64,000 nucleotides of DNA from Macrostomum hystrix (GCA_950097015.1 CATNEN010000011.1:6200001-6264000); one strand, 5' to 3'. Shown: positions 21,591 through 63,500, counted from the stretch's first letter. The notes: generated by a model from the sequence alone, not told the origin. Numbers and translations: made by a program.

Positions 21591-22065
21591 TAACCATGCC
21601 ATGTCGCACCTAAAAAAGTCTGTCCAGTGTGCTTTTATTCTTAAATTTCAATGTCTTCGTAGTTACGTAGCTTATCTTGATTTGACCTTACAAAAGGTAG
21701 AGCGCATGAAAAGCAAATAGTGTACTCAGCAAAAGCCCTCTTGCTGCGCTATCACTCTGTCTAACCCCTGACGAACTCAAAATTATGTTCTCTAAACTCT
21801 TTTCTTTGTTGACTGTCTGTCTCAAAAGAACAGTTCAACCAATGCGGCGTAGAGAAAGACGCGCAAGGTAGTTTTTACCAGACCTGAGAAAACTTAGCTT
21901 AGACAAACATTGGTACTGGCACTAGCTTGTTGTACTTTGGTCTTTCTTTCCACGTTGAAGCGACGTATTTGTGCAACATATATACTCGTATAATTCGTGA
22001 GGTGGAGAACAGAGGTTCATAGTGTATACCAAATACTTTGCTCTACAATAGCTCTTCTTGCAAGC

Positions 22066-23659: not shown

Positions 23660-24093
23660 CAAGTTTGGTGTGAAATTCGAAGCGCGACGGACGAACGACA
23701 CGAGCTTTAACAAAGAAACAAATAATTTATTTTAAACATTTAGCTATAGTACCCGATTAAGAACTTTGAAAATAAATCAAGCATAGAAACAAAACACTTA
23801 TGCAGAAACAAGTGCGAGTACAAAGAGAAGCGTTTGTTTATTTCACACGGCTGTCATTGCCTTTTTAGGAATGTCAAATCGGAGCAGTTTGGAAGTAATT
23901 CGGTGCGATGTGACTGCAAAATAGACACGAGACACATTTGTAGGATTCTATTGCTATCTGGTTTTAATAGAAGCATCTATCTCGAAAATGTTATTCTTCT
24001 CTGATGTTATGGATGAATTCAGAATTGTGAAAAAAAATATGATAAACAATAAAGGAAATTATTGGCACATACGAGCGTATCACTCAATTTGAA

Positions 24094-24432
24094 TCTCGCA
24101 CCAAGGTCCATGAGCTCGATTCTGCGGCGAGGTCACATTTATTTGGGGCGCAGCCGCGGAGAGAAGGCTTGGGGGCTTGTCGTGCAACGCCCTTCAGGGC
24201 TAACCTTCAAGGCACAGTGACAATGTACACTGCCTGACGATGAGAAAGTCAGGGCAGATGTACACACCTGTGTGAGCGTGTGCCTGAGTACGGTATCAGT
24301 GTGCGTGTGAGTTTAGGAGTCAGCGAAATGGGCAGAATTGCCTCCTCGCTGGCTGCGGGTCTAGTGTCACCAAATGATGTGCCATTGCCCGCAGCCCTCC
24401 TGAAGCTATTATTATTACTATTAATATTATTA
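24094..24432 (+). mobile_element. SINE family 1 copy, 5'-truncated
   Basis: Starts at CTCGCACCAAGG and ends CCTGAAGCTATTATTATT. Confidence 0.88.
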
Positions 24433-24474: not shown

Positions 24475-27400
24475 TTAGGATATAAAGGCAGTTATCGTGG
24501 CCAGGACGTGTTCTTGACACACTGGACATTTGCTCGAGGTTTTCAGGCACACGTTGCAAGCGGCAAGATGGCTGCAAGGTAGTGTGACTTGGTTCTTCGT
24601 TCTAGACTTGCAGACAACACATTTGTCACTATTTTCGAGCCGCTCTGCGTCACAAGATGAGTCAGGCTTGCGCCTAGCATCTAATGTTTCAGAGGCCGAT
24701 CTGGAAATATGCCGAAAGTGACTGTACCTTCATAAAAGAAACTCAACGAGAAAACTTCTCACGAAGCGAGGTAAACATGACAGATTGAGACTTCCGTAAG
24801 CGCTTAAATTCGCTCAACAATCCACACTGAGCCATAAGAACAGACATCGAAGAGAGGGCTACGAAGGTGAAGGTAGGGGAGGGTAAGGGTCACACATGCT
24901 CGCTGACACGGTATCCTCAAATACACACGAATAAAGGTACATCTGCACTATCGTTCTCATCGTCTTGGGGAATTTTCTTTCTCAGGGGCAAATATTTTTT
25001 ACTTTTTCGAACTCCTAACCCGACACTCATAAGTCTGTAGCGCAAACAAATGGACTACAGGCTGACTATGACAGCAATCAATTTCCAAAACACCAGGCAC
25101 CAACCTTGGGACTTCGCCAGCAAAGTCGGGTTTCCTTCCAGTGGGAGCCGCAGCGTCTGTCTGCTGCAGAGTACTGCCTGCCATACACAGCAGCAGCAGC
25201 TTCACCAGCTCAGCAGTTGTCACCAGGCTGGCCACAGCAGCCAGGGCCGACTCGCTCAGAGCCTGTACCCGCTGCATCAGTCGGCCAGCCGACGCTGGTG
25301 GCCGCATCTCGGAAGCGTCGGCGAGGAACTCCTGCAGAGCGGCGAAGTCCACCAGATGGCGCGAGAAACCGAAGCTGTGAACCAGGTTGGGCGCGGAGCT
25401 GTTCAGGTAGTTGTCCAGCACAGCTGCTTGACTCGCTGACAACGACTTGGCGAACTTCCTAACTCTCCCGGGCTTCGCCTCGCCAACCGCTTCGTCCAGC
25501 ATGCTGAGCAGGTCTTCGTAGATGCAGCCGTCAGTGCAGTGCCGGCCAACGGACGCCGATCTGCAGTTTCAATGTGACCACACGTGTACAATCGTGTGAT
25601 AGGAATAACCCGATGTAATAAGGACTAGGGGGATTAGGCTTTCCTTGACACCGTATTTCAGGAAATGGGTAATTTAATGTGTTCTGCCTCGGTCTTTTGA
25701 GAATTTTATTGCGACCCGGGTTGTCCACTTTTTTAGCCCGCGTAGTGCGCCAGTTGGCTGGCAATAATAATAATAATAGCTTCAGGAGGGCTGCGGGCAA
25801 TGGCACATCATTTTATGACACTAGACCTGCAGCCAGCGACGAGGCAATTCTGCCCATTTCGCTGATTCCCGAGCACACACGCACACTGATACCGTACTCA
25901 GGCACACGCTCACACAGGTGTGTACATCTGCCCTGACTTTCTCATCGTCAGGCAGTGTAAACTGTCGTGCCTTGGAGGTTGGCCCTCAAGGGCGTTGCAC
26001 GACAAGCCCCCAAGCCTTCTCTCTGCGGCTGCGCCCCAAATAAATGTGGCCTCGCCGCAGAATCGAGCTCAGGGACCTTGGTGCGAGGCAAACGCGTTAA
26101 CCGCTCTGCCACCGACCGAAGGTCTGCCTTCGAGTGCTGACTTCCCCAGATCGTACAGGTTTCGAGGACACATGCAGCAGAAGTGGCGCACGCCGATTTC
26201 CAACGCTAATTTCGGAGCGGACGCCCACACTGGCTAGTCCATCTGGCTTTCTCAGAGTGGGCGCCGTGCGCTCTCAGTGCGCTCCGCATTTTGAAGATAA
26301 TCGGCGACACACAAAAGCTTCAAGCTGGTTTTCTGCAGAGCCTGCGACTGTAATTGCTGCCACATTTAGCTTAACTGAGCTGCGAGCTTCGTTCCTTGTT
26401 AAATCATACGTACCCTTTAACGCCTGGTCTCTAAATTAAGAGAATGAAATTTCCAAACAATTTTAACACCGATAGGATTTTCCGGCTAAACCGTCCAGAG
26501 GAGGAGGGTATTCAAGACCGTCTTGGTGGACAATACTGACCCTAATTTAAGATATTCAAGACCGTCTTGGTGGACAATACTGAACCTAATTTAAGATGTT
26601 CAAGACCGTCTTGGTGGACAATACTGACCCTAATTTAAGATGTTCAAGACCGTCTTGGTGGACAATGCTGACCCTAATTTAAGATGTTCAAGACCGTCTT
26701 GGTGGACAATACTGACCCTAATTTAAGATGTTCAAGACCGTCTTGGTGGACAATACTGACCCTAATTTAAGATGTTCAAGACCGTCTTGGTGGACAATAC
26801 TGACCCTAATTTAAGATGTTCAAGACCGTCTTGTGGACAATACTGACCCTAATTTAAGATGTTCAAGACCGTCTTGGTGGACAATACTGACCCTAATTTA
26901 AGATGTTCAAGACCGTCTTGTGGACAATACTGACCCTTATTTAAGATGTTCAAGACCGTCTTGGTGGACAATACTGACCCTAATTTAAGATGTTCAAGAC
27001 CGTCTTGGTGGACAATACTGACCCTAATTTAAGATGTTCAAGACCGTCTTGGTGGACAATACCGATCCTATTTTATGATGTTCAAGACCGTTTTGGTGGA
27101 CAATACCGATCCTATTTTATGATGTTCAAGACCGTCTTGGTGGACAATACCGATCCTATTTTATGATGTTCAAGACCGTCTTGGTGGACAATACCGATCC
27201 TATTTTATGATGTTCAAGACTGTCAGAATCTTAACAGGACTTAGAATGCCGACCCAAATTGATGACGCTAAAAACCGTTTTATTATAAAACTTTGATATG
27301 TTAACGGCACCAAGCGTTGGGACTGTTCAGTACCCACACCCACAGTTCATTGGTCACGTCATTGGATCATAAAAGCAATACGGTGCAGAGGGTACAGTAT

Positions 27401-36294: not shown

Positions 36295-39200
36295 TCAATT
36301 ATAGCCCTCCTCCTTCTTGCCGTGTTTGATCATCTTGGTGAACTCGGTGTAGTTGAAGCGGCCGTCCTGTACGGGGGCGCCGTGCAGCAGTTCGTCCACC
36401 TGATCGTCTGTCCAACGATCGCCCATTGTGGTGAGGATCTCTCTCAGGCGGTCCTCCGAGATATGCCCGGCTCCCTCCGGATCGAAGCAGCCGAAGGCAT
36501 TCTTGATGGTGTCCTCCGGATCGCTGCCGGACATCTTCTCACCAAACAGAGTCAGGAACATTGTGAAATTGATTGGTCCGGGAGCCTCGCTAACCATCTC
36601 CTCGGCGTATTGTTGAAGGCCAACTTCGTTCTTGCCAAGGGAGACAAGGATCTCAGAGAGGTCCTCGGCATCGATGAAGCCGTCCTTGTTGATGTCGATC
36701 ATGTTGAACGCCTCCTGCACAGTGGGTTAGCGAGTTTGAAAAATTTGAAAAATATGAATAAATAAACGCTTTCACACTACTGACACGAGTAGTTGACTGG
36801 GGAACGGCAGCATCGGAACTTTGCCAAGTCATTTTTAGTGATTAGTCATTTAGTCAATTCAAGTGATTACTGACACTAACTAAACTATCCAGCAAACTAT
36901 CGGGAATTTATCCAGCAAACAATCTAGAATTTATCTAGCAAACTATCTAGAATTTATCCAGCAAACAATCTAGAATTTATCCAGCAAACAATCTAGAATT
37001 TATCTAGCAAACAATCTAGAATTTATCTAGCAAAATAGTACGTTGGTTTCATAAAAGATTCTACAAAAAGCACATAACAGAATCCAGACCCAATGCTGCA
37101 ATTTTCAGTCACTGACAGAACAAGAAATTTTAAAAAAATAGACAGAAAAAGAAAAACGCGTTGCTGCTTATAATTGACTTGCTGAAGAACCAAGTATAGA
37201 GTAGGAGAGAGGCGTGGCAATGAATGAGCAGTTTATTTCTGCAACAGCTTTACGACATTCGCAGTTTAAGGACAGAAACACGCAGTCAATGGAAATTAGC
37301 ACTAAATGCGCATATGCAAGAAAAAAAATAGTCAAAGACCTAGTCCTGCTTTATAGTGTTGAACTATAAGGCCTTAATCTTATGAAATTAGATAGTTGAG
37401 CTAAAAAGCTTATAGGCTATAGACTTACTTAGACATTTCAAAGAGTCAGATTATGGTATATACAGAAAAGCTGACAGACAGTTACAGACAAGCCGACAGT
37501 GACAAACAGACAGTTGCAGACAAGCTGACAGACAGATACAGACAAACTAACAGACAGATACAGATTAACAGAGACAGACAGAGATAGTATGCCAGACAGA
37601 GTACAGTACCGACAGACAGATACAAACAAGCTGACAGTAGCAAACAGACAGGCTTACAGACAGATAAAGACAAGCTGACAGACAGATACAGACAAGCTGA
37701 CAGACAGATACAGCCAAGCTGACAGACAGATACAGACAAGCGCTGACAGACAAGCTGACAGACAGTTACAGACAAGCTGACATACAGTTACAGACAAGCT
37801 GACAGACAGATACAGCCAAGCTGACAGACAGATACAGACAAGCGCTGACAGACAGATACAGACAAGCGCTGACAGACAAGCTGACAGACAGTTACAGACA
37901 AGCTGACAGACAGTTACAGACAAGCCGACAGACAGACACAGCCAAGCTGACAGACAGATCTACAGACAAGCGCTGACAGACAAGCTTACAGACAGATAAA
38001 GACAAGCTGACAGACAGATACAGACAAGCTGACAGACAGATACAGCCAAGCTGACAGACAGATACAGACAAGCGCTGACAGACAAGCTGACAGACAGTTA
38101 CAGACAAGCTGACAGACAGTTACAGACAAGCTGACAGACAGATACAGCCAAGCTGACAGACAGATACAGACAAGCGCTGACAGACAGATACAGACAAGCG
38201 CTGACAGACAAGCTGACAGACAGTTACAGACAAGCCGACAGACAGATACAGCCAAGCTGACAGACAGATCTACAGACAAGCGCTGACAGACAAGCTTACA
38301 GACAGATAAAGACAAGCTGACAGACAGATACAGAAAAGCTGACAGACAGATACAGCCAAGCTGACAGACAGATACAGACAAGCGCTGACAGACAAGCTGA
38401 CAGACAGTTACAGACAAGCTGACAGACAGTTACAGACAAGCCGACAGACAGTTACAGACAAGCTGACAGACAGATACAGCCAAGCTGACAGACAGATACA
38501 GACAAGCGCTGACAGACAAGCTGACAGACAGATACAGACAAGCTGACAGACAGATACAGACAAGCGCTGACAGACAGATACAGACAAACTGACAGACAGT
38601 TACAGACAAGCTGACAGACAGATACAGACAAGCTAACAGACAGATACAGATTAACAGAGACAGACAGAGATAGTATGCCAGACAGAGTACAGTACCGACA
38701 GACAGATACAAACAAGCTGACAGTAGCAAACAGACAGGCTTACAGACAGATAAAGACAAGCTGACAGACAGATACAGACAAGCTGACAGACAGATACAGC
38801 CAAGCTGACAGACAGATACAGACAAGCGCTGACAGACAAGCTGACAGACAGTTACAGACAAGCTGACATACAGTTACAGACAAGCTGACAGACAGATACA
38901 GCCAAGCTGACAGACAGATACAGACAAGCGCTGACAGACAGATACAGACAAGCGCTGACAGACAAGCTGACAGACAGTTACAGACAAGCTGACAGACACT
39001 TACAGACAAGCCGACAGACAGACACAGCCAAGCTGACAGACAGATCTACAGACAAGCGCTGACAGACAAGCTTACAGACAGATAAAGACAAGCTGACAGA
39101 CAGATACAGACAAGCTGACAGACAGATACAGCCAAGCTGACAGACAGATACAGACAAGCGCTGACAGACAAGCTGACAGACAGTTACAGACAAGCTGACA

Positions 39201-41225
39201 GACAGTTACAGACAAGCTGACAGACAGATACAGCCAAGCTGACAGACAGATACAGACAAGCGCTGACAGACAGATACAGACAAGCGCTGACAGACAAGCT
39301 GACAGACAGTTACAGACAAGCCGACAGACAGATACAGCCAAGCTGACAGACAGATCTACAGACAAGCGCTGACAGACAAGCTTACAGACAGATAAAGACA
39401 AGCTGACAGACAGATACAGAAAAGCTGACAGACAGATACAGCCAAGCTGACAGACAGATACAGACAAGCGCTGACAGACAAGCTGACAGACAGTTACAGA
39501 CAAGCTGACAGACAGTTACAGACAAGCCGACAGACAGTTACAGACAAGCTGACAGACAGATACAGCCAAGCTGACAGACAGATACAGACAAGCGCTGACA
39601 GACAAGCTGACAGACAGATACAGACAAGCTGACAGACAGATACAGACAAGCGCTGACAGACAGATACAGACAAACTGACAGACAGTTACAGACAAGCTGA
39701 CAGACAGATACAGACAAGGGGTAAGAAGTCAGACGGCAAGTGTTGATTATCAGTCGGGCAAGTTCTCTACGTATTCCGTCCAGCAAAGGTGCTGATAAAA
39801 ACAGTAAGTTTAAATCGCCTTTTAGGTGCTTCAAAAAAGGATAAATCTAAGAAAAAACAGCAAACTTAAAAATGAGATCTCGCAGGACGAAAGGCGTAGA
39901 GAACGATGCCCAATAGTTCTTTGGCTGCTGAATCACAATAGACTGTAGATTTGTAATTTCAATTTTTCAACAAAAGATAATGCAGATCAGAAACAGGCAT
40001 CTGGCTTGAGTCGGCAAGTGGGCTCTTATAGGCGCGAGAATTTTTTTCCAATTAAAAAACGTCATTAATCTAACATTTAATAGATCCCACAAAATTGCTT
40101 TCCTAATCCGACGATATCAGATTATAAAAACGTTTTCAAGGAAAAAATTTCTTCCTAGAAGAAAAAACGAAATAACTAAATCCCAAAGCAATAAACAGAA
40201 GTCACGAACCATTTTTATGGTTCAAAGAAATAAATTCTAAAAAAAATAGAGCCCGTCTTGATTCACATCCGAGTTTTATAACATAATTTCTATTTCTTTA
40301 AAAAAACCTATGATTTGCCCCTAGATCAGACGTAAATAAGTAGACAGTATGTCAGACAGAGTACAGACAAAGAGACAGTATGTCAGACAGAGTACAGACA
40401 AAGAGACAGTATGTCAGACAGAGTACAGACAAAGAGACAGTATGTCAGACAGAGTACAGACAAAGAGACAGTATGTCAGACAGAGTACAGACAAAGAGAC
40501 AGTCTGTCAGACAGAGTACAGACAAAGAGACAGTCTGTCAGACAGAGTACAGACAAAGAGACAGTATGTCAGACAGAGTACAGACAAAGAGACAGTATGT
40601 CAGACAGAGTACAAACAAAGAGACAGTATGTCAGACAGAGTACAGACAAAGAGACAGTATGTCAGACAGAGTACAGACAAAGAGACAGTATGTCAGACAG
40701 AGTACAAACAAATAGACAGTATGTCAGACAGAGTACAGACAAAGAGACAGTATGTCAGACAGAGTACAGACAAAGAGACAGTATGTCAGACAGAGTACAG
40801 ACAAAGAGACAGTATGTCAGAGAGAGTACAGACAAAGAGACAGTATGTCAGACAGAGTACAGACAAAGAGACAGTATGTCAGACAGAGTACAGACAAAGA
40901 GACAGTATGTCAGACAGAGTACAGACAAAGAGACAGTATGTCAGACAGAGTACAGACAAAGAGACAGTATGTCAGATTGACAAGATGAGTCATTGTAAAA
41001 GACAAGAAGACAGTAATGTTTATAAACATGGGGTAGAAACAAAAAAGCATACTGATAAAAAACAGATAGGAACTATTTTTAATTATGGTATGAAGAATGA
41101 TGAAAATAAATTAAACAAACCTTAAATTCCTGAACAGACTGTTCAGAGAACATGCTGAACACATTGCTAGTGTAGCGCTGGGTGCGCTGCCTTGGTCCAC
41201 GACGCTTAGCAGCAGCCTTGGACAT
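36295..41225 (-). CDS. MRLC: Myosin II regulatory light chain, 174 aa; exons 41225-41121, 36714-36295
   Basis: It reads [35 protein letters not shown]|[19 protein letters not shown] (EF-hand) and includes [15 protein letters not shown]. There is one phase-0 GT-AG intron of 4.4 kb. Confidence 0.95.
36880..37032. repeat. 23-bp minisatellite (AATTTATCCAGCAAACAATCTAG)
   Basis: About 6 units in the MRLC intron. Confidence 0.9.
37470..39717. repeat. Complex GACA-based satellite with a 1086-bp higher-order duplication
   Basis: Modules include ACAGACAAGCTG, GATACAGCCAAGCTG and GTTACAGACAAG. Matching spurious ORFs recur exactly 1086 bp apart (37565/38651, 37654/38740, 37892/38978, 37986/39072). Confidence 0.95.
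40343..40976. repeat. 31-bp minisatellite (GACAGTATGTCAGACAGAGTACAGACAAAGA)
   Basis: About 20 units in the MRLC intron. Confidence 0.97.
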
Positions 41226-44100: not shown

Positions 44101-45054
44101 ATTATAAATATGATCTATATAGACTCCATGGCTACTAACCGAATGTCCTCTGCAGCTAAATGGATAAATGTTTACATTAACCTTTATAATGGGATTACAG
44201 TAATATCGTGATATATGAAATAGATCTATTACCAAACTGTTCCTATACGTGTCAATAGGATTTTCTTTATCCGTCCACTGTTTATCTTGATCTGTTCCGT
44301 TCGGTTAGAAAGTCTGTACGCAGCGACCAAAGCTAACAGACGAATGATCCATGGCACCCATTTGACAGCCAGTAGAATTGAAATAACGTGGAAAATAATT
44401 TCTTCCTCGAGGACTATTAAAAATAGCTCAAACTCTGATCTTCGACCTCTAAAAATTCTACAACATCAGCACATACATGCATAGTACATATATTACATAG
44501 ATATATGCATCACAGTCAGTCTACACACCTTTTCAGTATCTGTATTCATCTGTTATATATTTAAGGCGACATTCGACATTTAACAGCCGACAGTTAACGC
44601 TCTTGTTTTGCTGCTTGGTAACTTTGGTAACTCGAACACGCGCATGCCGAAAGTCTTGTTCGGTTGCACCGCAACAGATGCAGAAGGCAGCTGAATATCA
44701 ACTAGTTTTTTTCTTTTCTTACCTTTCTCGGTGAAGAGGCCTAGAAAACAGCGACCTTTTCACTTAAAAAGTGTCGCAAGATGTACTTTCTAGCGTGTTA
44801 TATTTATGTATCTAGGATAGACCAAGAATTTGATATACTAATTTCCATTTGCTTAAATGTTGCTATTTCTATAACACATTTTCTTGAGACGCATGTCTGT
44901 CTGTCTTAGCTAGCTGCATCATTGACAGGAATGTAGAAAGATTTTACATTTAATCGGAAAAATTATTCAGACTGACAAATATGACAATAGGTGAGATCCG
45001 TGTTGAATGACTGCTGTTTCTGATGAAAGCTATAGGCCAGATAATAGTGCATGA

Positions 45055-45235
45055 GTTTTGAAGGTCGGGAGTTCGATTCCCGACTCCACTATAACAATAT
45101 GTGTAATTTAGCAACACACGTAACTCTGCATTCCTTCAGTTCACCCAGCTGAACTGATACGAGTATTTTCTGGTGTCATTGAGGGTGTACACAGCCTTCA
45201 CTGCTCATCAGGCACAATCTGGACAGGTAAAAATA
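45055..45235 (+). mobile_element. SINE family 2 copy, degenerate
   Basis: GAAGGTCGGGAGTTCGATTCCCGACTCCACT head followed by CTTCAGTTCACCCAGCTG. Confidence 0.65.
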
Positions 45236-45252
45236 GAAATTAATTTTTTCAT

Positions 45253-45932
45253 TACTGCAGGGCGGCTGCGGGCAATGACACATTATTCGGACCAGCTTGC
45301 AAAGGCTGGCGCAGCCAGCTCCCTGATGGGCCCGGGCCCGGAGGCCCCGATCCCAGCCTCTGTGGTCAACTCCAACATCAACCGCTGGATGGAGACCCGG
45401 AGGAGGTGGTCTAGCACCCTGAACTGTCGCCAGTCCAGGGCTGTAGTGCCAACCCCCTCTAGTAATCTGCGTAAAGCCTTGCTCAGGCTAAATCGCAGAG
45501 ACCTGAGAGCAGTCACCATGGCCCTCTCGGGACATGGCTGCTTCACCAGACACCGCTACCTCCAAGGCCACGTGCCTGAGGAAATGTGTCCTTTCTGCTG
45601 CTCCGGACGTGAAAACGCCGAGCATTTCATCTGCCACTGCCCGGCCTTCACCCGGGCTAGGCTAAAACATCTCGGGCCGGCACCGACCCTTGTCGAAGCC
45701 TGCTCACCCGATAACATTCCACAACTCGCCCACTTCCTACGGGATACCGGCCGAGCTGAGTTCTTCCCAGCCTATGGCGAGGAAGATCACGCGGCGGATT
45801 CGACCGACGGACCACCCTGAGCGGCACCGCCTCGCTGGAGGCCGTCTGGCTGCTAGGGGTTAGCGATATGGGCGGCATCGGCCGCCTCCTCGCTGCGTCC
45901 GTCATGGAGGCTCCCTGCCGCTAAGTAGGTGT
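45253..45932 (+). mobile_element. 5'-truncated non-LTR retrotransposon (RNase H end plus CCHC knuckle, I/R1/LOA-like) with an inverted 3' tail
   Basis: ORF 45290-45820 reads [57 protein letters not shown]. The 3' UTR runs to 45932, and 45253-45290 is an inverted tail. Confidence 0.85.
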
Positions 45933-46059
45933 ATTGATGTTTTTATAGGTAGGATTGTTAAGTCCTACTTGGTAAGTACAGCTCGCTAATATAGCAAAAC
46001 AGGCAGACAAAGTTAAGCTTCAGCTAAAGTAGAGAATTTAGAGAGAAGAACCTATTTAA

Positions 46060-46263
46060 CTAAAATAGGCAGGTAGCAACAAGTGCAGCGATGAGTGTAT
46101 GGCGATGGCCCTTCAGTTCATCCACCCCAGACATGTGCAATATGTGAAATTCTTTCTCCCCTGATGCGCCCACTTTCAGATAAAAATCTGCATATTCATT
46201 CAATTGCAACAATGCCAGCAAACGCATATTTTCTGTTTCCATATCAGTCGGCGCATGCCGCAT
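46060..46263 (-). CDS. Possible small SAM-domain protein or exon
   Basis: LLALLQLNEYADFYLKVG..LHMSGVDELKGHRHTLIAAL resembles the SAM pattern L..L.L..Y...F...G..GHR..I..AL but is slightly short. The start is uncertain. Confidence 0.4.
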   Translation of the reverse strand: MRHAPTDMETENMRLLALLQLNEYADFYLKVGASGEKEFHILHMSGVDELKGHRHTLIAALVATCLF

Positions 46264-46560
46264 GACAATGTACACCGCAGCCCATGCAATATAGATAGCA
46301 ACAGTTTTTGACAGGCACACACGCGGAAAACAGGAAAACAGGAAAACATGCCTAATCGCTAGGCATGCAGGCACTAGAGCAGCTAGCTAGCCTCCCATTG
46401 GTCAGGAGTAAATGTCTTCCTAACCGTCCACGAAGCCCGGGTCCGCTCTCTGGGATAGGGATATATCTTGGGGAAACGAAATGGGCATGCAGGCACCGAT
46501 TCTAGCGATTTCTACGGAGAAAATCCCCTCATTCACGTCGGTGAAAACTGTCGGCAGGAG

Positions 46561-47722: not shown

Positions 47723-48289
47723 TTGAGTAAACATAGAGGCCATTCCAATGTACACGATAGCACACATTAATTCAAAATATGTTTGCACCCAGTTTTACTA
47801 CTTAAAGCAACGGAGAGAATGAAATTTTGCTTTTGTAGCAGCGCGAAAAGCACTGAGCATATTGAATTATAAAAATGTAGACTAATTAAAAGCCGGATGC
47901 ATGTATCGGACCAAAGCACACGTCAACAATAACATCCAAGCCATTAGGGGCATATAAATCGAGATGCATAATGAAACTTCCCTTTCCGATGCTGCTATAC
48001 AAAAGAAATTTAGTAAGTATGGACGGAAAAAAGTAGGCATAGCGGAAGAGAAAGGGTTGGCTAGAAAATGAAAGATCGTCCCTTTCAATTTGGGCTTGAT
48101 CGCGATGCGAGTTTTGAGAATATAAAAAACTAAAAAGCCTTTAAAAGGCCACGAATATGCAAAAGAAGTTTTCCACCGAAGAAGGTCAAAATAATTTAGC
48201 GGCATAAATTAGCTTCATTATATTGAGTCAAAAGTGCAAAATTAAGAGCTGTGGATATTGCTCAAAGACTTTTCGTACATTGGACGTAC

Positions 48290-48455
48290 TCGCACCAAGG
48301 TCCATGAGTTCGATTCCGCGGCGAGGCCTGATGATGAGACAGTCGGGGCAGATGTACACGCCTTTGCGAGTGTGCCTGTGTGTAGTATCTGTTCGAGTAT
48401 GTGCTCAGGAGTCAGCGGATTGAGCAGAATTGCATCCTCGCTGACTGCGGGTCGA
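48290..48455 (+). mobile_element. SINE family 1 copy, deleted and diverged
   Basis: CTCGCACCAAGGTCCATGAGTTCGATTCCGCGGCGAGG is joined directly to CCTGATGATGAGACAGTCGGGG. Confidence 0.8.
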
Positions 48456-48974
48456 CGGTTACCGACAGATGGCACAATTTATAGGACAGGGCGTGGGTGT
48501 TGCCAGGTTTCAGGACTGGCTTTGGTAGGCTGATTTATATATCCAACAGGACTTCAGATTTCAAGGACGACAAGCGAGGTTGCTCAAAGTAGAAACTCTC
48601 GCTTTCTCTCTTCACATTCCTCAGAAATATTTCTATACTTTGTTGTTAGATTTGGATGAACTTTTAGACAGAGAATGACTGCACTTTAAGTGTGATTAGA
48701 GAATCGCATGGATATATCAACTACAAAAATTGAATTGCATGTAATGGCTTCTTTCCCATCTTGCCTATTAGTGACAGATATCAAATACAAGAGCAGCTGA
48801 AAGCCAAAGCGAGAAGAGTGAGTACACTACTCAAAAGCATTGCGAAGCACTCATCTCAATAAAATGTGAAGGCTTAGAAATACTATTTTTGTTAAATATA
48901 TCGAAGAACATATGATCGAAGCTTGCATTAGCGGCACAAATGGTTTTGTCTCACCAAAAAGTCTGTCATGAATG

Positions 48975-51900
48975 TCTATCTCACAGTCTCTATCTCACAG
49001 TCTCTATCTCACAGTCTCTATCTCACAGTCTCTGTCTCACAGTCTCTATCTCACAGTCTCTATCTCACAGTCTCTGTCTCACAGTCTTTATCTATCTCAC
49101 AGTCTCTATCTCACAGTCTCTATCTCAAAGTCTTTATCTATCTCACAGTTTCTATCTCACAGTCTTTATCTATCTCACAGTCTCTATCTCACAGTCTCTA
49201 TCTCACAGTCTCTATCTCACAGTCTCTATCTCACAGTCTCTATCTCACAGTCTCTATCTCACAGTCTCTATCTCACAGTCTCTATCTCACAGTCTCTATC
49301 TCACAGTCTCTGTCTCACAGTCTCTGTCTCACAGTCTCTATCTTACAGTCTCTATCTCACAGTCTTTATCTCACAGTCTCTATCTCACAGTCTCTATCTC
49401 ACAGTCTCTATCTCACAGTCTCTGTCTCACAGTCTCTATCTTACAGTCTCTATCTCACAGTCTTTATCTCACAGTCTCTGTCTCACAGTCTCTGTCTCAC
49501 AGTCTTTATCTATCTAACAGTCTTTATCTATCTCACAGTCTTTATCTATCTCACAGTCTCAATCTATCTCATAGTCACTATCTCACAGTCTCAATCTATC
49601 TCATAGTCACTATCTCACAGTCTTTATCTCACAGTCTTTATCTATCTCACAGTCTTTATCTATCTCACAGTCTTTATCTATCTCACAGTCTTTATCTATC
49701 TCACAGTCTTTATCTATCTCACAGTCTTTATCTATCTCACAGTCTCTATCTAACAGTCTTTCTATCTCACAGTCTTTATCTATCTCACAGTCTTTATCTA
49801 TCTCACAGTCTCTATCTCACAGTCTTTATCGATCTCACAGTCTTTATCTATCTCACAGTCTCTATCTCACAGTCTCTATCTCACAGTCTTTATCTCAAAG
49901 TCTTTATCCATCTCACAGTCTCTATCTCACAGTCTCTATCTCACAGTCTCTATCTCACATTCTCTGTCTCACAGCCTCTATCTCACAGTCTCCATCTCAC
50001 AGTCTCTATCTCACAGTCTGTATCTCACAGTCTCTATCTCACAGTCTCTATCTCACAGTCTCTATCTCACAGTCTCTATCTCACAGTCTCTGTCTCACAG
50101 TCTCTATCTCACAGTCTCTATCTCACAGTCTCTATCTCACAGTCTCTATCTCACAGTCTTTATTTATCTCACAGTCTTTATCTATCTCACTGTCTTTATC
50201 TCACAGTCTCTATCTCACAGTCTCTGTCTCACAGTCTTTATCTATCTAACAGTCTTTATCTATCTCACAGTCTTTATCTATCTCACAGTCTCTATCTCAC
50301 AGTCTCTATCTCACAGTCTTTATCGATCTCACAGTCTTTATCTATCTCACAGTCTCTATCTCACAGTCTCTATCTCACAGTCTTTATCTCAAGGTCTTTA
50401 TCCATCTCACAGTCTCTATCTCACAGTCTCTATCTCACAGTCTCTATCTCACAGTCTCTATCTGACAGTCTCTATCTCACAGTCTTTATTTATCTCACAG
50501 TCTTTATCTATCTCACTGTCTTTATCTCACAGTCTCTATCTCACAGTCTCTGTCTCACAGTCTTTATCTATCTCACAGTCTTTATCTATCTCACAGTCTC
50601 TATCTCACAGTCTCTATCTCACAGTCTCTATCTCACAGTCTTTATCTATCTAACAGTCTTTATCTATCTCACAGTCTCTATCTCACAGTCTTTATCGATC
50701 TCACAGTCTTTATCTATCTCACATTCTCTATCTCACAGTCTCTATCTCAAAGTCTTTATCTCAAAGTCTTTATCCATCTCACAGTCTCTATCTCACAGTC
50801 TCTATCTCACAGTCTCTATCTCACAGTCTCTGTCTCACAGTCTTTTTCTATCAAACAGTCTTTATCTATCTCACAGTCTTTATCTATCTCACAGTCTCTA
50901 TCTCACAGTCTTTATCGATCTCACAGTCTTTATCTATCTCACAGTCTCTATCTCACAGTCTCTATCTCACAGTCTTTATCTCAAAGTCTTTATCCATCTC
51001 ACAGTCTCTATCTCACAGTCTCTATCTCACAGTCTCTATCTCACAGTCTCTATCTCAGTCTCTATCTCACAGTCTCTATCTCACAGTCTCTATCTCACAG
51101 TCTTTATCTCACAGTCTCTATCTCACATTCTCTGTCTCACAGCCTCTATCTCACAGTCTCCATCTCACAGTCTCTATCTCACAGTCTCTATCTCACAGTC
51201 TCTATCTCACAGTCTCTATCTCACAGTCTGTATCTCACAGTCTCTATCTCACAGTCTCTATCTCACAGTCTCTATCTCACAGTCTCTATCTCACAGTCTC
51301 TGTCTCACAGTCTCTATCTCACAGTCTCTATCTCACAGTCTCTATCTCACAGTCTCTATCTCACAGTCTTTATTTATCTCACAGTCTTTATCTATCTCAC
51401 TGTCTTTATCTCACAGTCTCTATCTCACAGTCTCTATCTCACAGTCTTTATCTATCTCACAGTCTTTATCTATCTCAAAGTCTTTATCCATCTCACAGTC
51501 TCTATCTCACAGTCTCTATCTCACAGTCTCTATCTCACATTCTCTGTCTCACAGCCTCTATCTCACAGTCTCCATCTCACAGTCTCTATCTCACAGTCTG
51601 TATCTCACAGTCTCTATCTCACAGTCTCTATCTCACAGTCTCTATCTCACAGTCTCTATCTCACAGTCTCTGTCTCACAGTCTCTATCTCACAGTCTCTA
51701 TCTCACAGTCTCTATCTCACAGTCTCTATCTCACAGTCTTTATTTATCTCACAGTCTTTATCTATCTCACTGTCTTTATCTCACAGTCTCTATCTCACAG
51801 TCTCTGTCTCACAGTCTTTATCTATCTAACAGTCTTTATCTATCTCACAGTCTTTATCTATCTCACAGTCTCTATCTCACAGTCTCTATCTCACAGTCTC

Positions 51901-53430
51901 TATCTCACAGTCTTTATCTATCTAACAGTCTTTATCTATCTCACAGTCTTTATCTATCTCACAGTCTCTATCTCACAGTCTTTATCGATCTCACAGTCTT
52001 TATCTATCTCACATTCTCTATCTCACAGTCTCTATCTCACAGTCTTTATCTCAAAGTCTTTATCCATCTCACAGTCTCTATCTCACAGTCTCTATCTCAC
52101 AGTCTCTATCTCACAGTCTTTATCTATCTAACAGTCTTTATCTATCTCACAGTCTTTATCTATCTCACAGTCTCTATCTCACAGTCTTTATCGATCTCAC
52201 AGTCTTTATCTATCTCACATTCTCTATCTCACAGTCTCTATCTCACAGTCTTTATCTCAAGGTCTTTATCCATCTCACAGTCTCTATCTCACAGTCTCTA
52301 TCTCACAGTCTCTATCTCACAGTCTCTATCTAACAGTCTCTATCTCACAGTCTTTATTTATCTCACAGTCTTTATCTATCTCACTGTCTTTATCTCACAG
52401 TCTCTATCTCACAGTCTCTGTCTCACAGTCTTTATCTATCTCACAGTCTTTATCTATCTCACAGTCTCTATCTCACAGTCTCTATCTCACAGTCTCTATC
52501 TCACAGTCTTTATCTATCTAACAGTCTTTATCTATCTCACAGTCTCTATCTCACAGTCTTTATCGATCTCACAGTCTTTATCTATCTCACATTCTCTATC
52601 TCACAGTCTCTATCTCACAGTCTTTATCTCAAAGTCTTTATCCATCTCACAGTCTCTATCTCACAGTCTCTATCTCACAGTCTCTATCTCACAGTCTCTG
52701 TCTCACAGTCTTTTTCTATCAAACAGTCTTTATCTATCTCACAGTCTTTATCTATCTCACAGTCTCTATCTCACAGTCTTTATCGATCTCACAGTCTTTA
52801 TCTATCTCACAGTCTCTATCTCACAGTCTCTATCTCACAGTCTTTATCTCAAAGTCTTTATCCATCTCACAGTCTCTATCTCACAGTCTCTATCTCACAG
52901 TCTCTATCTCACAGTCTCTATCTCAGTCTCTATCTCACAGTCTCTATCTCACAGTCTCTATCTCACAGTCTTTATCTCACAGTCTCTATCTCACATTCTC
53001 TGTCTCACAGCCTCTATCTCACAGTCTCCATCTCACAGTCTCTATCTCACAGTCTCTATCTCACAGTCTCTATCTCACAGTCTCTATCTCACAGTCTGTA
53101 TCTCACAGTCTGTATCTCACAGTCTCTATCTCACAGTCTCTATCTCACAGTCTCTATCTCACAGTCTTTATCTATCTCACAGTCTTTATCTATCTCACAG
53201 TCTTTATCTATCTAACAGTCTTTATCTATCTCACTGTCTTTATCTCACAGTCTCTATCTCACAGTCTCTGTCTCACAGTCTTTATCTATCTAACAGTCTT
53301 TATCTATCTCACAGTCTTTATCTATCTCACGGTCTCTATCTCACAGTCTCTATCTCACAGTCTCTATCTATCTCATAGTCACTATCTATCTCATAGTCAC
53401 TATCTCAAGTCTTTATTTCACAGTCTCTGT
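48975..53430. repeat. 4.5-kb satellite of 14-bp (TCTCACAGTCTCTA) and 18-bp (TCTCACAGTCTTTATCTA) units with a 1868-bp higher-order duplication
   Basis: Rare variants recur 1868 bp apart: AAGGTC 50391/52259, CAAACAG 50852/52720, CTCAGTC 51054/52922. Confidence 0.97.
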
Positions 53431-53451
53431 CTTAATTTATTCATCTCCAGC

Positions 53452-53580
53452 CCCCCAGTCCATGGACTGAACAGTAGTACGCAGTCTTCAAATGTTCCGC
53501 GCAATAGTTTCGGCTGTGCTGTGTGGCTGCACATCTGGCCCAATGGGGGCAGGTGTAATTAAATATTATTATTACTTTTA
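53452..53580 (+). mobile_element. SINE family 2 3' part with ATT tail
   Basis: CAGTCCATGGACTGAACAG..CACATCTGGCCC..GGCAGGTGTAATTAAATATTATTATT. Confidence 0.75.
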
Positions 53581-54177
53581 GCCGCTAAATAATAATCTAT
53601 AGCAAATAATAATATTATTTTCAGTCCTCTCTGAGCACTGCAGCTCAGCAAACAAAATCAAAGTAGAGCAGAGTGAGCAAACGAAAAGGAACAAGATTAT
53701 ATTTAGAGAATGTAAGTTGCAGTAAGCAGGGGGGTAGTTTAGTTGCCCTAATCGGGGGTGAGAAATTACGGTTAGCAATCCTCTCTCGTAGGAGAATAAA
53801 AATACTTTGGCAAAGAGCGGAATGGAATAAGAAGTTAGGTCAATTGCACATCGAATCTCGTTTGTGCGTAATTAAATTTTCGGACATTGTAATGCATGTA
53901 TATGGGAGCATGAGTGTCTTTTTGCACTTGTGTGTTGGGCGTGGCTGTAGGTTTATAGATTGTAGATTATTGGTATTGGAGAGAAAGCACTTTAGCAAAT
54001 CATTCATTTTTAAAACGCCTATTGAACAACTGCCCTTGTCCTAGGCTCTCATGATAATTATTGGCTCTCAAGTAATGAGCGATTATCACTCGACTGATCA
54101 ATTCGAGCGAGATAAACTTAATTCTTTATTCTCATCGGAACCAATTTGCTTCGTTTTTTTAGATTGTGAAACTATCG

Positions 54178-54444: not shown

Positions 54445-54640
54445 ATTAGGCCAGATGTGCAGCCGACAGCACAGACGAAACTATTGCGCGGAACATTTGA
54501 AGACTGCTTACTACTGTTTAGTCCATGGACTCGGGAGATGCCACACACCCACCCTTAATTACCCCTGGTATTTTGATTCAAGAATCGAACCCCCGACTTT
54601 CACATCGTGAATTTGACGCTCTAATGACTAGACTAAAACT
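54445..54640 (-). mobile_element. SINE family 2 copy, near full-length
   Basis: The tRNA-like head is at 54575-54640 (GGGGGTTCGATTC on the minus strand) and the body is inverted relative to 53452-53545. Confidence 0.75.
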
Positions 54641-57961: not shown

Positions 57962-60370
57962 TTGGAGAGTGTCCTGAAGGGTTGGAGTGAGTCCTGAAGA
58001 GTTGGAGTGAGTCCTGAAGAGTTGGAGTGAGTCCTGAAGAGTTGGAGTGAGTCCTGAAGAGTTGGAGTGAGTCCTGAAGAGTTGGAGTGAGTCCTGAAGG
58101 GTCGAAGGGTTGGTGAGTGTCCTGAAGGGTTGGAGAGTGTCCTGAAGAGTTGGAGTGAGTCCTGAAGAGTTGGAGTGAGTCCTGAAGAGTTGGAGTGAGT
58201 CCTGAAGAGTTGGAGTGAGTCCTGAAGGGTCGAAGGGTTGGTGAGTGTCCTGAAGGGTTGGAGAGTGTCCTGAAGAGTTGGAGTGAGTCCTGAAGGTTCG
58301 AAGGGTTGGTGAGTGTCCTGAAGGGTCGAAGAGTGTCCTGAAGAGTTGGAGTGAGTCCTGAAGGGTCGGAGAGTGTCCTGAAGGGTTGGAGAGTGTCCTG
58401 AAGGGTTAGAGAGTGTCCTGAAGGGTTGGTGAGAGTCCTGAAGGGTTGGAGAGTGTCCTGAAGGGTTGGAGAGTGTCCTGAAGAGTTGGAGTGAGTCCTG
58501 AAGGGTCGAAGGGTTGGAGAGTGTCCTGAAGGGTTGGAGAGTGTCCTGAAGAGTTGGTGAGAGTCTTGAAGGGTTGGTGAGAGTCTTGAAGGGTTGGGGA
58601 GAGTCTTGAAGGGTTGGGGAGAGTCTTGAAGGGTTGGAGTGAGTCCTGAAGGGTCGAAGGGTTGGTGAGTGTCCTGAAGGGTTGGAGAGTGTCCTGAAGG
58701 GTTGGAGAGTGTCCTGAAGGGTTGGGGAGAGTCCTGAAGGGTCGAAGGGTTGGTGAGTGTCCTGAAGAGTTGGAGTGAGTCCTGAAGGGTCGAAGGGTTG
58801 GAGTGTCCTGAAGGGTTGGAGAGTGTCCTGAAGGGTCGAAGGGTTGGTGAGTGTCCTGAAGAGTTGGAGTGAGTCCTGAAGGGTCGAAGGGTTGGTGAGT
58901 GTCCTGAAGGGTTTGGGAGAGTCTTGAATGGTTGGAGAGTGTCCTGAAGGGTTGGTGAGTGTCCTGAAGGGCTGGAGAGTGTCCTGAAGGGTTGGGGAGA
59001 GTCTTGAAGGGTTGGGGAGAGTCTTGAAGGGTTGGGGAGAGTCTTGAAGGGTTGGGGAGAGTCTTGAAGGGTTGGGGAGAGTCTTGAAAAGGGCTGGAGA
59101 GTGTCCTGAAGGGTTGGGAGAGTCTTGAAGGGTTGGTGAGTGTCCTGAAGAGTTGGAGTGAGTCCTGAAGGGTCGAAGGGTTGGAGAGTGTCCTGAAGGG
59201 TTGGAGAGTGTCCTGAAGAGTTGGTGAGAGTCTTGAAGGGTTGGTGAGAGTCTTGAAGGGTTGGGGAGAGTCTTGAAGGGTTGGGGAGAGTCTTGAAGGG
59301 TTGGAGTGAGTCCTGAAGGGTCGAAGGGTTGGTGAGTGTCCTGAAGGGTTGGAGAGTGTCCTGAAGGGTTGGAGAGTGTCCTGAAGGGTTGGAGAGTGTC
59401 CTGAAGGGTTGGAGAGTGTCCTGAAGGGTTGGAGAGTGTCCTGAAGGGTTGGGGAGAGTCCTGAAGGGTCGAAGGGTTGGTGAGTGTCCTGAAGAGTTGG
59501 AGAGTGTCCTGAAGGGTCGAAGGGTTGGTGAGTGTCCTGAAGAGTTGGAGTGAGTCCTGAAGGGTCGAAGGGTTGGTGAGTGTCCTGAAGGGTTTGGGAG
59601 AGTCTTGAATGGTTGGTGAGTGTCCTGAAGGGTTTGGGAGAGTCTTGAATGGTTGGAGAGTGTCCTGAAGGGTTGGTGAGTGTCCTGAAGGGCTGGAGAG
59701 TGTCCTGAAGGGTTGGGGAGAGTCTTGAAGGGTTGGGGAGAGTCTTGAAGGGTTGGGGAGAGTCTTGAAAAGGGCTGGAGAGTGTCCTGAAGGGTTGGGA
59801 GAGTCTTGAAGGGTTGGGGAGAGTCTTGAAAAGGGCTGGAGAGTGTCCTGAAGGGTTGGGAGAGTCTTGAAGGGTTGGGGAGAGTCTTGAAGGGTTGGGG
59901 GGAGTCTTGAAGGGTTGGGGAGAGTCTTGAAGGGTTGGGGAGAGTCTTGAAAAGGGCTGGAGAGTGTCCTGAAGGGTTGGGAGAGTCTTGAAGGGTTGGG
60001 GAGAGTCTTGAAGGGTTGGGGGGAGTCTTGAAGGGTTGGGGAGAGTCTTGAAGGGTTGGGGAGAGTCTTGAAGGGTTGGGGAGAGTCTTGAAAAGTTGGG
60101 GAGAGTCTCGAAGGGTTGGGGAGAGTCTTGAAGGGTTGGGGAGAGTCTTGAAGGGTTGGGGAGAGTCTTGAAGGGTTGGGGAGAGTCTTGAAGGGTTGGG
60201 GAGAGTCTTGAAGGGTTGGGGAGAGTCTTGAAGGGTTGGGGAGAGTCTTGAAGGGTTGAGTTTTAAAAGCGTCTAAGGAGAGTCTTGAAGGGTTGGGGAG
60301 AGTCTTGAAGGGTTGGGGAGAGTCTTGAAGGGTTGAGTTTTAAAAGCGTCTAAGGAGAGTCTTGAAGGGT
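57962..60370. repeat. 2.4-kb G-rich ~19-20-bp satellite (GAGTCCTGAAGAGTTGGAGT to GAGTCTTGAAGGGTTGGGGA)
   Basis: The unit drifts from left to right toward GGGTTGGGG-containing forms. Confidence 0.97.
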
Positions 60371-60506: not shown

Positions 60507-63500
60507 CTATTTCTTGTGAGGACTGTCGGGAGTCTGAGGACGCATGGACTCCAGCTTGGCGGACACCTCGCTGACGTGGCTGATGTTGGACGCGTTCCTT
60601 GACGCCTCGATCTCACTCCAGCCGTGCGCGTTGGCTGAGGAGCTGACGTTGCCGGCGAGTTTCTGGCGCTCCCTGTCCAGAGCCGAGAGCAGCTTGGAAA
60701 CGCCGGTGTCAGTGTTGCCCGATGGCCGGCCTTCCAGCCAGTAGGTGGTCATCTTGCCCTTTCCCTGGTTTTCGGGTTTCGACATTTTATAATACTGACT
60801 TACATACACTCGAACACTGACTTAAAGACCATAGGGGCCAACCTCCAAGGCACAGTGAGAGTGTACACTGTACACTGTACACTGTACACTGACGATGAGA
60901 AAGTCAGGGCAGATGTACACACCTGTGTGAGCGTATGCCTGCGTACAGTATATGTGTGCATGTGTGCTCAGGAGTCAGCGAGTAGGGCAGAATTGCTTTC
61001 TCGCTGGCTGCGGGTCTAGTGTCAGTAAAAGATGTGCCATTGCCCGCAGCCCTCCTGCAATTATTATTATTATTATAACCATGTTGGCTATTATTGTTTA
61101 TTACACTGTTAATTCTTTTTAATCTATCTACTGTTAATTACTGTTAATTACTATCTACTGGTCTATCTACTGTTAATTACACAAGCTCATGTTGGTACAC
61201 ATTTAACGGCTTGGCGACCGGAAGCCATGCAGTGTTAGGAGTAGGCCTCATTGCTAAAGGACACAAATTTTTCCAGTGGAGTATAGGGAATCGAAACCCC
61301 GATAATAATGGTGACATTATCTACACAGGTAGATAAACGTGCTAAACAAGTAGAACGCATTTCTTCCGCCAACCTTGATATCGACTTCGCCGCGGGGAGC
61401 AGTCTGGTAGACTTTGTACTGGTCCAAGCGAGTTTTCGTAGCTTCACTGATGTGTATCTTCTGGCTAGCGCTGTTCGACTCCATCCGGGATGCCGTGTTC
61501 ACGACGTCGCCGAACAGGCAGTAGCGCGGCAGCTTCAGGCCAACAACCCCAGCTATGACAGTACCGCTATGCATGCCTGGGGTTTGTGCGATGGTTGGTG
61601 TTAAGAAAGCGTCAATCAATCAATCGATCAATCAATCAATCAATCAATCGAAAACCATAACAAGCAGAACTGTTCAAACCCACTGACCAACTCGAATCTT
61701 GATGTGGTTCTTGTTGTCCGACGGGTCGATGATTGAAGTCACAGCCGAGATCATCTCCAGGGCCATCTCGGCCATGATGGCAGCGTGGTACTTGGTCACA
61801 GTCGGGATCCCGGAAGCCACCATGTAGACGTCGTTGACCGTCTCGACTTTGTAGACCCGGTGCTTCTCCGTGAGCTCATCGAAGCAGGCGTAGATTGTGT
61901 TGAGCAGGGAGACAACCTGAGTCGGCGTGATCAGATTGGCAATGTCCTTGAAGCCAGAGACGTCACTAAACTGTATGGTGGCATCCTCGAATGTTGAGCA
62001 AGTGTTGGCGGACGAGCCTTCCGTGCGAATCTTGTCAGCAACCTGGATATATCATTATTTGGCAATTGCTTAAATCTCTTCTAGCAGTTTTTAATGATGA
62101 AAAGCATTTAACACTCAACCGCTGTGACTCGCCTGTTTCGGTATCATCTGGTAGAGCAGCTCGTCCGATCGCTGCCTCTCCTGGTCGAGCTTCTTGAGCG
62201 CCTCCTGGAACCGTTTGCTCTTCTCCTCCTGCTGCTGGAGGGCCAGTTTGAGTTCGGCCTGCTGCTGCTCACCAGCCAGGACCATGTCGCGAGAGGAGTC
62301 ATGCATGCTCAAATCGTTGACAAACAGGCCAGCCTTCTGCATCGTGTCGACGTCCTGCAACTGCGGCGTGCCAAGGAACACGATGGCGTCCCAACCCTCC
62401 ATGTACTTCATCTGGCCACGAAGGCGCAGAGCGCCAGAGATGGAACTCAAACTTTTCTTGTAGCTGTCCTGGTTTGTTGCTCCTGTAAAAAGACATGATG
62501 AACGAATGTTAGGAGTAGTAATGTTTACCGATTAAAGCGCTGATTTCGGTCATAGTGACCACCTCCAGGCGTAGTCTTCAAATGGGCAAAGGCGATATAG
62601 TAGGATGGTAGAAGTGGTGCGAATTTGAGTACCCATTTTTAGAGCTAACAAAGGTCCGTACTTTAAAATTGAGCTCACATTACGCATCAACGATTAGCTG
62701 CTTGTCTGTAAATAAGCTACTCATTTAATCAGTAACTCATTCGAGAGAAACTCACCACTGCCCTTTCGCTTTTTCTCCTCCATTATAAGGCGAAGGGCTT
62801 CGAGATCTTTTTCGTCCAGCTTCTGAATGGCCATGATCTCGAAGACATTGTTAGTGTGCAGCATCACCTTTGACGCAAGTTTTTACAGGACGAATATAAA
62901 TTTATATTTTATTAAATAATCACGGATTACACCCAATTACGCCAGATGTGCTGCCGACAGCCGCAGCTATTGCGCGGCCAATCTGAAGACTGTGTACAGC
63001 TGTTCAGTCCATGGACTGTGGAGACGCCACACCCACCCACAAATTGTTTCAGTGGAGTCGGGAGTCGAACCCCCGACCATTAAGTCGTGAGTCCGACACT
63101 CTAACCACAAGGCTACAACCTCTCCAGCAAGCTACAACATTTAACAAAGTTTTATACTCAGAAACTTTTATCGGAATATTTACAGCGTCCCAGGTGAAGG
63201 GTATCATCGGACGGTTCAGCAGGAAGGCCTCGTTCACCATCTTTCCGACGATGTCTGGCAAAGCGTTCAGCATACCATCGCCAACGTCCACAATAATGAG
63301 GCCGCGGTTGAAGACGATGTTGAATGGGAAAACCTCGAAGAATACTTCGGAACGAACTGGAAATTCGTCTTGCAGTTTCTGAAATGCGACATTCAATTTA
63401 TTATCTGACGTTTATAAGAAGGTTTGAGGGACAAATTCGCGCATTTATTGTAGTCAACACTCCAAGATTCTAGCCTTAAATCCAAGATTGTTGAAGTGCA

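Follow-up and report, generated by a model that had tools for sequence, protein, structure and literature searches.

SINEs and LINEs that form a stringent-type pair have a common 3' tail, as described by Ohshima et al. 1996 and, for the eel pair UnaL2/UnaSINE1, to the extent summarized in PMC3747384. LINEs of this type require their own 3' UTR for retroposition and their SINEs carry LINE 3'-end sequence; UnaL2 terminates in repeats of TGTAA, and these are probably involved in starting reverse transcription (PMC3747384). Inverted segments within an insertion are described for mammalian L1. Twin priming was reported by Ostertag and Kazazian 2001 (as cited in PMC13174262 and PMC5389967); in its classical form, as these citations convey it, the 5' part of the same RNA is inverted and there is one 3' terminus. 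Antisense Alu/L1 chimeras flanked by target-site duplications (TSDs) have been reported as well (PMC13174262, Cell Genomics 2026), and deletions of target sequence upon LINE insertion were documented for L1 by Gilbert et al. 2002 (as cited in PMC13174262).

The locus described here lies in the window, i.e. the whole 64-kb stretch of Macrostomum DNA that was analysed. A reading of 44900-46300, together with the ORF listing, revealed a GC-rich block at 45253-45932 embedded in A/T-rich DNA. A LINE piece on the plus strand and a piece of the repeat SINE1 on the minus strand stand there head-to-head, in opposite orientation and with zero bases between them. With moderate confidence, we take the locus to be a composite of two different retroelements, and not the single twin-primed LINE that a sequence-only reading had proposed.

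On the plus strand lies the genuine C-terminus of a LINE ORF2. It is 5'-truncated and extends (45290-45820) from the last RNase H residues, DQLAKAG, over a knuckle CPFC...HFIC to the TGA at 45818-45820. The stop-free translation of 45293-45817 comprises 175 residues, begins with QLAKAG (45293) and contains CPFC...HFICHC, a Cys/His knuckle of the form CX2CX8HX2C; the Pfam zf-RVT match (E=0.026) was below the family cut-off. Judging from the domains of its relatives, the truncation falls right where the RNase H domain ends, at ~45290, which leaves the C-terminal 176 codons and the 3' UTR. A 215-aa ORF at 45173-45820, which reads through the inverted SINE1 piece, was considered and rejected as a chance upstream extension of the LINE frame.

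Six relatives with 58-71% amino-acid identity to the window LINE were retrieved by a word-based protein search (59-72% for P0001-P0006 by alignment), and two of these six related fragments reach upstream into the RNase H domain PF00075, which was present in P0001, P0002 and P0008. A second word-based search with the last 116 aa yielded no relative above 72% identity, and an exhaustive representative protein search with P0001 as query returned relatives in the thousands. In the full-length protein P0010 (1235 aa, 50% identity), Exo_endo_phos (APE endonuclease), RVT_1 and RNase_H were recognized, and the window fragment aligns with its C-terminus. The LINE family is built of an APE endonuclease, an RT, an RNase H and, at the C-terminus, a Cys/His knuckle; this domain order places it, at group level, with the RNase H-bearing APE-type LINEs (I / LOA / R1 / Tad-like group). 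The closest proteins were gene models of Macrostomum lignano in UniRef, with 70-76% identity over ~100 residues. Scanning metagenomes with the protein alignment recovered only the distant L007 (42% identity), which was left out of the analysis, and tblastn detected no second copy of this LINE within the 64-kb window. The relatives used here share 50-76% protein identity and stem from metagenome contigs or UniRef models. As a side observation, the flanks of two of them, L002:1203-1366 and L008:878-965, are tandem arrays with units such as CCGTCTCTCCCGCTTCTGTA and CTGCCCGCATCTGCG, so that these two LINE copies sit in satellite-like DNA of their source organisms.

Across its 175 codons, the window fragment shows 0 stops and 0 frameshifts, and of the 44 residues invariant in at least 10 relatives it has retained 42. 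Its neutral divergence came out at ~5% or less in simulations. The LINE piece is a young copy, 5'-truncated and 3'-complete.

Completeness of the 3' end was assessed by comparing the sequence 3' of the stop codons in contigs of related fragments from public data. The 3' UTR of the window LINE (45821-45932, plus strand) is delimited by end-to-end alignment with those of L001-L006 and L008-L010, by the table of its modules and by RNA folds. It aligns with its relatives from the stop codon to CTAAGT at 45921-45926 and continues with AGGTGT. All eight relatives with complete ends (L001-L005, L008, L009 and L010) finish in ...[A/T]CC[C/T]TGCAG[C/T]TAAGTCAAG, i.e. in the shared terminus ...CCCTGCAG(C/T)TAAGTCAAG..., sometimes with one or a few extra TAAGT-type units, and past this terminus or tail their flanks are mutually unrelated. 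In the window LINE, CCCTGC.GCTAAGT is found at 45913-45926, and TCCCTG-CCGCTAAGT-AGGTGT spans 45912-45932, with the terminus CCGCTAAGT at 45918-45926 and the tail-like AGGTGT at 45927-45932. The tail of L008 is TAAGTCAAG alone; short tails are therefore normal for the family. Since the window copy ends in the canonical terminus of its family, it is 3'-complete and nothing is missing. The statement that the fragment stops at TAGGTGT without a tail was thus mistaken: the terminus is the one seen in 8/8 relatives, and the 3' ends of these LINE copies carry a different tail from the one that reading had supposed, an outcome it had itself named as contrary.

The other partner, SINE1, is the dominant repeat of the window with eight copies, as had been stated. 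According to within-window blast and an alignment of the eight copies, it is ~330 bp long, carries A-box and B-box motifs in a tRNA-like head and ends in ...CTCCTGCA followed by (ATT)n-type repeats. The reference copy at 24070-24426 (plus strand) shows the tRNA-derived head, the body, a Y-shaped 3' domain at 24314-24402 and the (ATT)n-type tail; further copies lie at 26087-25763(-), 21264-21592(+), 15940-16251(+), 5505-5237(-), 15156-15449(+), 60835-61076(+) and 48289-48471(+). Two peculiarities were seen among them. The copy at 60835-61076 carries a 7-nt unit, ACTGTAC, four times at 60866-60890 where the other copies have a single GTGTACACTG. The copies at 24094-24426(+) and 25763-26087(-) are 93.6% identical, have a common tail variant CTGAAGCT and face each other with their tails ~1.3 kb apart; they may have arisen by inverted duplication or have inserted separately as members of one young subfamily.

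Homology between the LINE 3' UTR (45851-45895) and SINE1 had been put at 35 of 41 ungapped positions, a count that was exact, and within-window blastn gave 76% identity (E=0.002). Splitting the sequences part by part and folding the RNAs showed the same architecture in LINEs and SINE1: a closing stem, hairpin 1, hairpin 2 and a tail. The closing stem reads CAGGGG/(A/T)CCCTG in LINEs and CAGGAG/CTCCTG in SINE1, hairpin 1 is conserved (AGCGRAATGGGCRG, loop, YGCCTCCYCGCT), and hairpin 2 measures 15-20 nt in LINEs and 45 nt in SINE1, where it consists of GGCTGCGGG, a loop and CCCGCAGCC. The plus-strand parts in the window LINE are the closing-stem 5' strand TAGGGG (45854-45859), hairpin 1 (45862-45894), the short hairpin 2 (45895-45911) and the closing-stem 3' strand TCCCTG (45912-45917).

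Several lines of evidence support the fold. The SINE1 3' domain folds with z=-3.7. For 17 pairs in a 15-sequence alignment, 91% of the 255 pair cells were paired, compared to at most 62% when the partners were slid, and none of 500 shuffles reached the observed score. GC/AU double changes distinguish LINEs from SINE1 at three pairs (5/91, 13/39 and 21/32 in alignment A8); these compensatory changes represent few independent events, essentially the LINE lineage versus the SINE1 lineage. At the basal pair, the window LINE and SINE1 have the A-U form in common, unlike most metagenome relatives. As a non-circular test, a covariance model was built solely from seven external LINEs. It matched the window LINE at 45851-45897 (E=1.9e-7), and next after it ranked SINE1 copies, matched at the position homologous to it (best E=0.0065). 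Apart from the LINE and the eight copies of SINE1, no Y-module was found in the window. As judged from alignment and predicted folds, the entire SINE1 3' domain is the Y-shaped module of the LINE with an expanded hairpin 2.

The shared Y module indicates that SINE1 would be reverse-transcribed by the RT of this LINE clade via stringent recognition of its 3' end, and we infer that SINE1 derives from, and is mobilised by, this RNase H-bearing LINE clade. The link between the two elements that had been proposed from their 3' homology thus proved stronger than claimed, since it comprises the whole module, compensatory pairs and the covariance model; the further statement that this very LINE mobilises SINE1 was overstated. 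The terminal repeats differ, with CTCCTGCA(ATT)n in SINE1 as opposed to CCCTGCAGCTAAGTCAAG(TAAGTCAAG) in the LINE clade. To our knowledge, tail repeats are common to both partners in the known stringent-type pairs; UnaL2 and UnaSINE1 both carry TGTAA repeats. As tails and hairpin 2 differ between SINE1 and the LINE, a sister lineage is a likelier partner than this exact LINE, and the true mobiliser of SINE1 is probably such a sister lineage.

In its main traits, the Macrostomum pair resembles the stringent-type pairs: SINE1 is tRNA-derived; the genome that harbors it also contains a LINE to whose 3' UTR end its 3' domain is homologous; compensatory changes preserve pairing in the conserved stem-loop that the two have in common; and both elements end in short tandem repeats and not in poly(A). 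Unlike in UnaL2/UnaSINE1, the shared unit is a three-helix Y module, whose hairpin 2 goes from 15-20 nt to 45 nt in SINE1, and the tails are different, (ATT)n in SINE1 and TAAGTCAAG in the LINE. The host is a macrostomid flatworm, and the partnership is one predicted from sequence. No paper on SINE/LINE pairs of Macrostomum turned up in a literature search.

We now turn to the inverted piece at the other end of the composite (45253-45290, minus strand). Its reverse complement matches the SINE1 3' terminus, as had been noticed, at 31/38 positions of the consensus, and five SINE1 copies were matched by blastn at 82-89% identity, the best with E=1e-4. The 38 nt contain some of the hairpin-2 loop, the hairpin-2 3' strand CCCGCAGCC, the closing-stem 3' strand GCCCTG and CAGTA. 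The piece is the 3' half of the SINE1-specific 45-nt hairpin plus the SINE1 terminus. Its hairpin-2 sequence was absent from all nine LINE 3' UTRs examined. It differs from the SINE1 consensus at 7/38 positions, the other copies, by hand count in the alignment, at 2-5, which suggests an older piece or a different SINE1 subfamily. A 12-nt exact identity (TGTCATTGCCCG) was also seen between the reverse complement of 45263-45274, i.e. hairpin-2 loop and stem, and L004:535-546 and L008:590-601, where it encodes CHCP; it is probably due to chance. An origin of the piece as inverted LINE coding sequence was rejected, given that SINE1 matches all 38 nt and the coding match ends after ~15 nt.

These data bear directly on the proposal that one LINE RNA was twin-primed, that the 38 nt are its own missing 3' end and that the breakpoints are adjacent in the RNA. 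The opposite orientations and a flanking 11/14 repeat, discussed below, fit such an event, and so does a superficial likeness between TAGGTGT in the LINE and TAGTGTC in SINE1, on which that reading had based its alignment. This alignment, however, pairs a post-stem tail with a hairpin-2 loop, i.e. non-homologous positions; the structural alignment sets the LINE end opposite the SINE1 end and not opposite the hairpin-2 loop. The inverted 38 nt are SINE1-specific and the LINE fragment has a 3' terminus of its own; one RNA would therefore need two successive 3' termini. Self-twin-priming further implies a LINE 3' UTR that runs past CTAAGTAGGTGT into ...CACCGAATAATGTG...CCCTGCAG, and the relatives end otherwise. 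We consider this origin very improbable.

One feature of the 38 nt points in another direction: the closing strand GCCCTG-CAG is nearer to the LINE form (CCCTGCAG) than to the CTCCTGCAA of SINE1. It might speak for a LINE lineage with a SINE1-type long hairpin 2, which would be the true partner, and the composite could also stem from a later deletion or inversion or from an assembly artefact. The window is dense in transposable elements, so that breakpoints would often fall inside repeats. We nevertheless regard these other origins as unlikely, because neither the window nor the relatives yielded a LINE with a long hairpin 2, the apparent youth of the LINE leaves little room for a much later rearrangement, and the sequence bears no sign of misassembly.

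What surrounds the composite matters for the way in which its two pieces were joined. On the left lies a diverged copy of SINE2, a second tRNA-derived family (44990-45252, plus strand), with 67-85% identity to other window copies in blastn. Such copies were found at 14851-14934(-), 61175-61302(-), 16294-16363(+), 63038-63083(-) and 54554-54602(-). The head of SINE2 resembles GTAGCCTAGTGGTTAGAG...GGTCGGGGGTTCGATTCCCGACTCCA and its tail is A/T-rich; SINE2 gave no match with model R1 and is thus without the Y module. Its alignment to the copy at 63k continues through the AT-rich tail to ~45247. The composite is bordered on its left by this A/T-rich 3' tail, in which the left one of two 14-mers lies, ATTAATTTTTTCAT at 45239-45252. 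The right one, ATTGATGTTTTTAT at 45933-45946, lies inside a TAAGT-rich stretch (45922-45977). Both are putative TSD copies and agree at 11/14 positions, in line with the earlier count.

How much weight can this repeat bear? Its longest exact run is 4 nt. An agreement of 11/14 was reached by 0.00025 of composition-matched flank pairs at fixed positions, by 0.009 of such pairs when the element boundaries were allowed a realistic slip, and by 0.0025-0.0085 of pairs of AT- or T-rich 14-mers. In simulations, a true 14-bp TSD as little diverged as the LINE had at least three mismatches in only 0.3-17% of cases. No other TSD was found around either piece, which leaves the 11/14 repeat as the only candidate direct repeat between the flanks, and TRF and a repeat finder reported nothing relevant. 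The outcome was ambiguous when the empty site was rebuilt from other copies of SINE2, whose tails are too diverged. On the right, at 45922-45977, three TAAGT motifs lie within 60 nt of each other, a clustering seen nowhere else in the window (chance ~0.001). This cluster consists of the LINE terminus and two downstream motifs, with the right 14-mer between them. L004 likewise has TTAAGT ~20 nt beyond its tail. The cluster may reflect a target preference for tail-like sequence or the remnant of an older tail, and its position around the right 14-mer further lowers confidence in the TSD. All in all, the 11/14 repeat is weak evidence for a target-site duplication. Elsewhere in the window, blocks at 38001-40000, 50001-54000 and 58001-60000 have an extreme strand composition, with an AT skew of 0.55 and GC skews of -0.39 to -0.63 and of +0.66; they are probably satellite or low-complexity arrays and inflate the same-geometry TSD control.

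Two explanations for the junction deserve weighing at greater length. According to the first, to which we give an even chance, the LINE and the SINE1 piece arrived separately, in two events, and the remainder of SINE1 was lost together with target DNA. An older minus-strand SINE1 would have been present in the A/T-rich tail of the SINE2 copy. Later, LINE integration would have been primed at 45932/45933 and the LINE 5' junction resolved within the older SINE1, possibly on a microhomology of 1-3 nt (CGG); the remaining SINE1 and the intervening target DNA would have been lost during integration or soon afterwards, and the similarity of the flanks at 11/14 positions would be due to chance in A/T-rich DNA. 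The complete LINE terminus of the window copy, as in 8/8 relatives, agrees with this sequence of events, as does the nature of the inverted piece, a SINE1 whose hairpin-2 loop sequence occurs in no LINE UTR. So do the apparent ages, with a little-decayed LINE next to a 38-mer diverged at 7/38 positions, and the improbability, at the divergence of the LINE, of three or more mismatches in a true TSD. Within-window blastn found no SINE1 remainder to the right of the LINE, which fits a deletion. By a rough estimate, the contrast in age speaks for separate events by a factor of a few; the divergence of the 38 nt could, on the other hand, reflect a SINE1 subfamily and not age. The LINE relatives compared are only 50-76% identical in protein, none of them from the same genome. 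If independent, the abutting pieces require a target-site deletion or a coincidence, and the 11/14 repeat flanks the composite exactly, which, again roughly estimated, favours a single TSD-flanked event ~3-10 fold. The possible CGG microhomology (45288-45290) is compatible with two-event and single-event routes. The prior rates, for target deletions associated with LINEs as for antisense chimeras, are of similar size and poorly known; both were taken from mammalian L1.

Target-site deletions in L1 offer the nearest parallel to the two-event course. There, as here, a truncated LINE borders at its 5' junction on unrelated upstream DNA, a clean TSD is missing and target sequence is lost. Unlike in L1, the deletion at the Macrostomum locus is inferred only, from the missing 5' ~290 nt of SINE1.

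The second explanation is a single integration event, in which twin priming used two different RNAs, those of the LINE and of SINE1. We hold it tentatively, as a possible but somewhat doubtful course of events. The bottom-strand nick would have primed LINE RNA at its tail and so produced the stretch from 45932 back to 45291, and the staggered top-strand 3' end (...TTTTTTCAT, 45252) would have primed the 3' end of SINE1 RNA, giving 45253-45290. SINE1 RNA would have been bound, via its Y module, by the same kind of RT; the two cDNAs would then have been joined, leaving a 14-bp TSD. Such an event would account for the opposite orientation of the pieces and the zero gap between them, and for the arrangement of their ends, the SINE1 3' terminus adjoining the left 14-mer and the LINE 3' terminus the right one. 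The only direct repeat found flanks the composite exactly, and both RNAs carry the same recognition module. A mechanism of this kind has, moreover, already been proposed for antisense chimeras of tRNA, 5S, U5 and mRNA with L1 (PMC13174262). Three mismatches in a 14-bp TSD, however, fit poorly with a LINE decay of ~5% or less, and the 38 nt (7/38) are more diverged from the SINE1 consensus than other copies. The 14-mers are low-complexity and A/T-rich, the left one lying in the SINE2 tail and the right one in the TAAGT-rich stretch. Chimeras of this kind are rare where they have been counted, in mammals, and the evidence comes from a single locus.

Twin priming on two RNAs would have its relatives in L1 biology. 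With L1 twin priming, as PMC13174262 and PMC5389967 cite it, the locus has in common two opposite reverse-transcribed segments between possible target-site duplications; unlike there, each segment has its own 3' terminus and comes from a different element. In antisense L1 chimeras with tRNA, 5S, U5 or Alu, which are attributed to twin priming on a second RNA, a non-LINE RNA has likewise been copied in antisense at the 5' side of a truncated LINE, and TSDs, putative ones here, enclose the entire structure. Those chimeras, however, are made by mammalian L1 with its relaxed poly(A) recognition and are known from many loci with clean TSDs of 7-17 bp (PMC13174262), in contrast to one locus here, with an imperfect 11/14 repeat and a stringent-type flatworm LINE, where the second RNA would be the SINE parasite of the LINE clade itself.

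In conclusion, the Macrostomum flatworm harbors a clear pair of SINE and LINE 3' modules, which fold into a defined Y-shaped RNA and include naturally occurring compensatory variants. That SINEs borrow the 3' module of a LINE is a principle known since 1996, and the Macrostomum pair is another example of it; its natural variants provide ready-made mutants with which stringent recognition of the template by an I/LOA-like LINE could be tested. Self-twin-priming would have carried a mammalian L1 mechanism to a distant clade and does not hold as stated. The variant with priming on two RNAs would be of moderate interest and rests on one imperfect 14-bp repeat. It is conceivable, though we lean against it, that one integration complex copied LINE RNA on one strand and SINE1 RNA on the other and left a TSD-flanked chimera. 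If true, this two-template event would be the first beyond mammalian L1, and it would directly record the presence of SINE1 RNA in the integration complex of this LINE.
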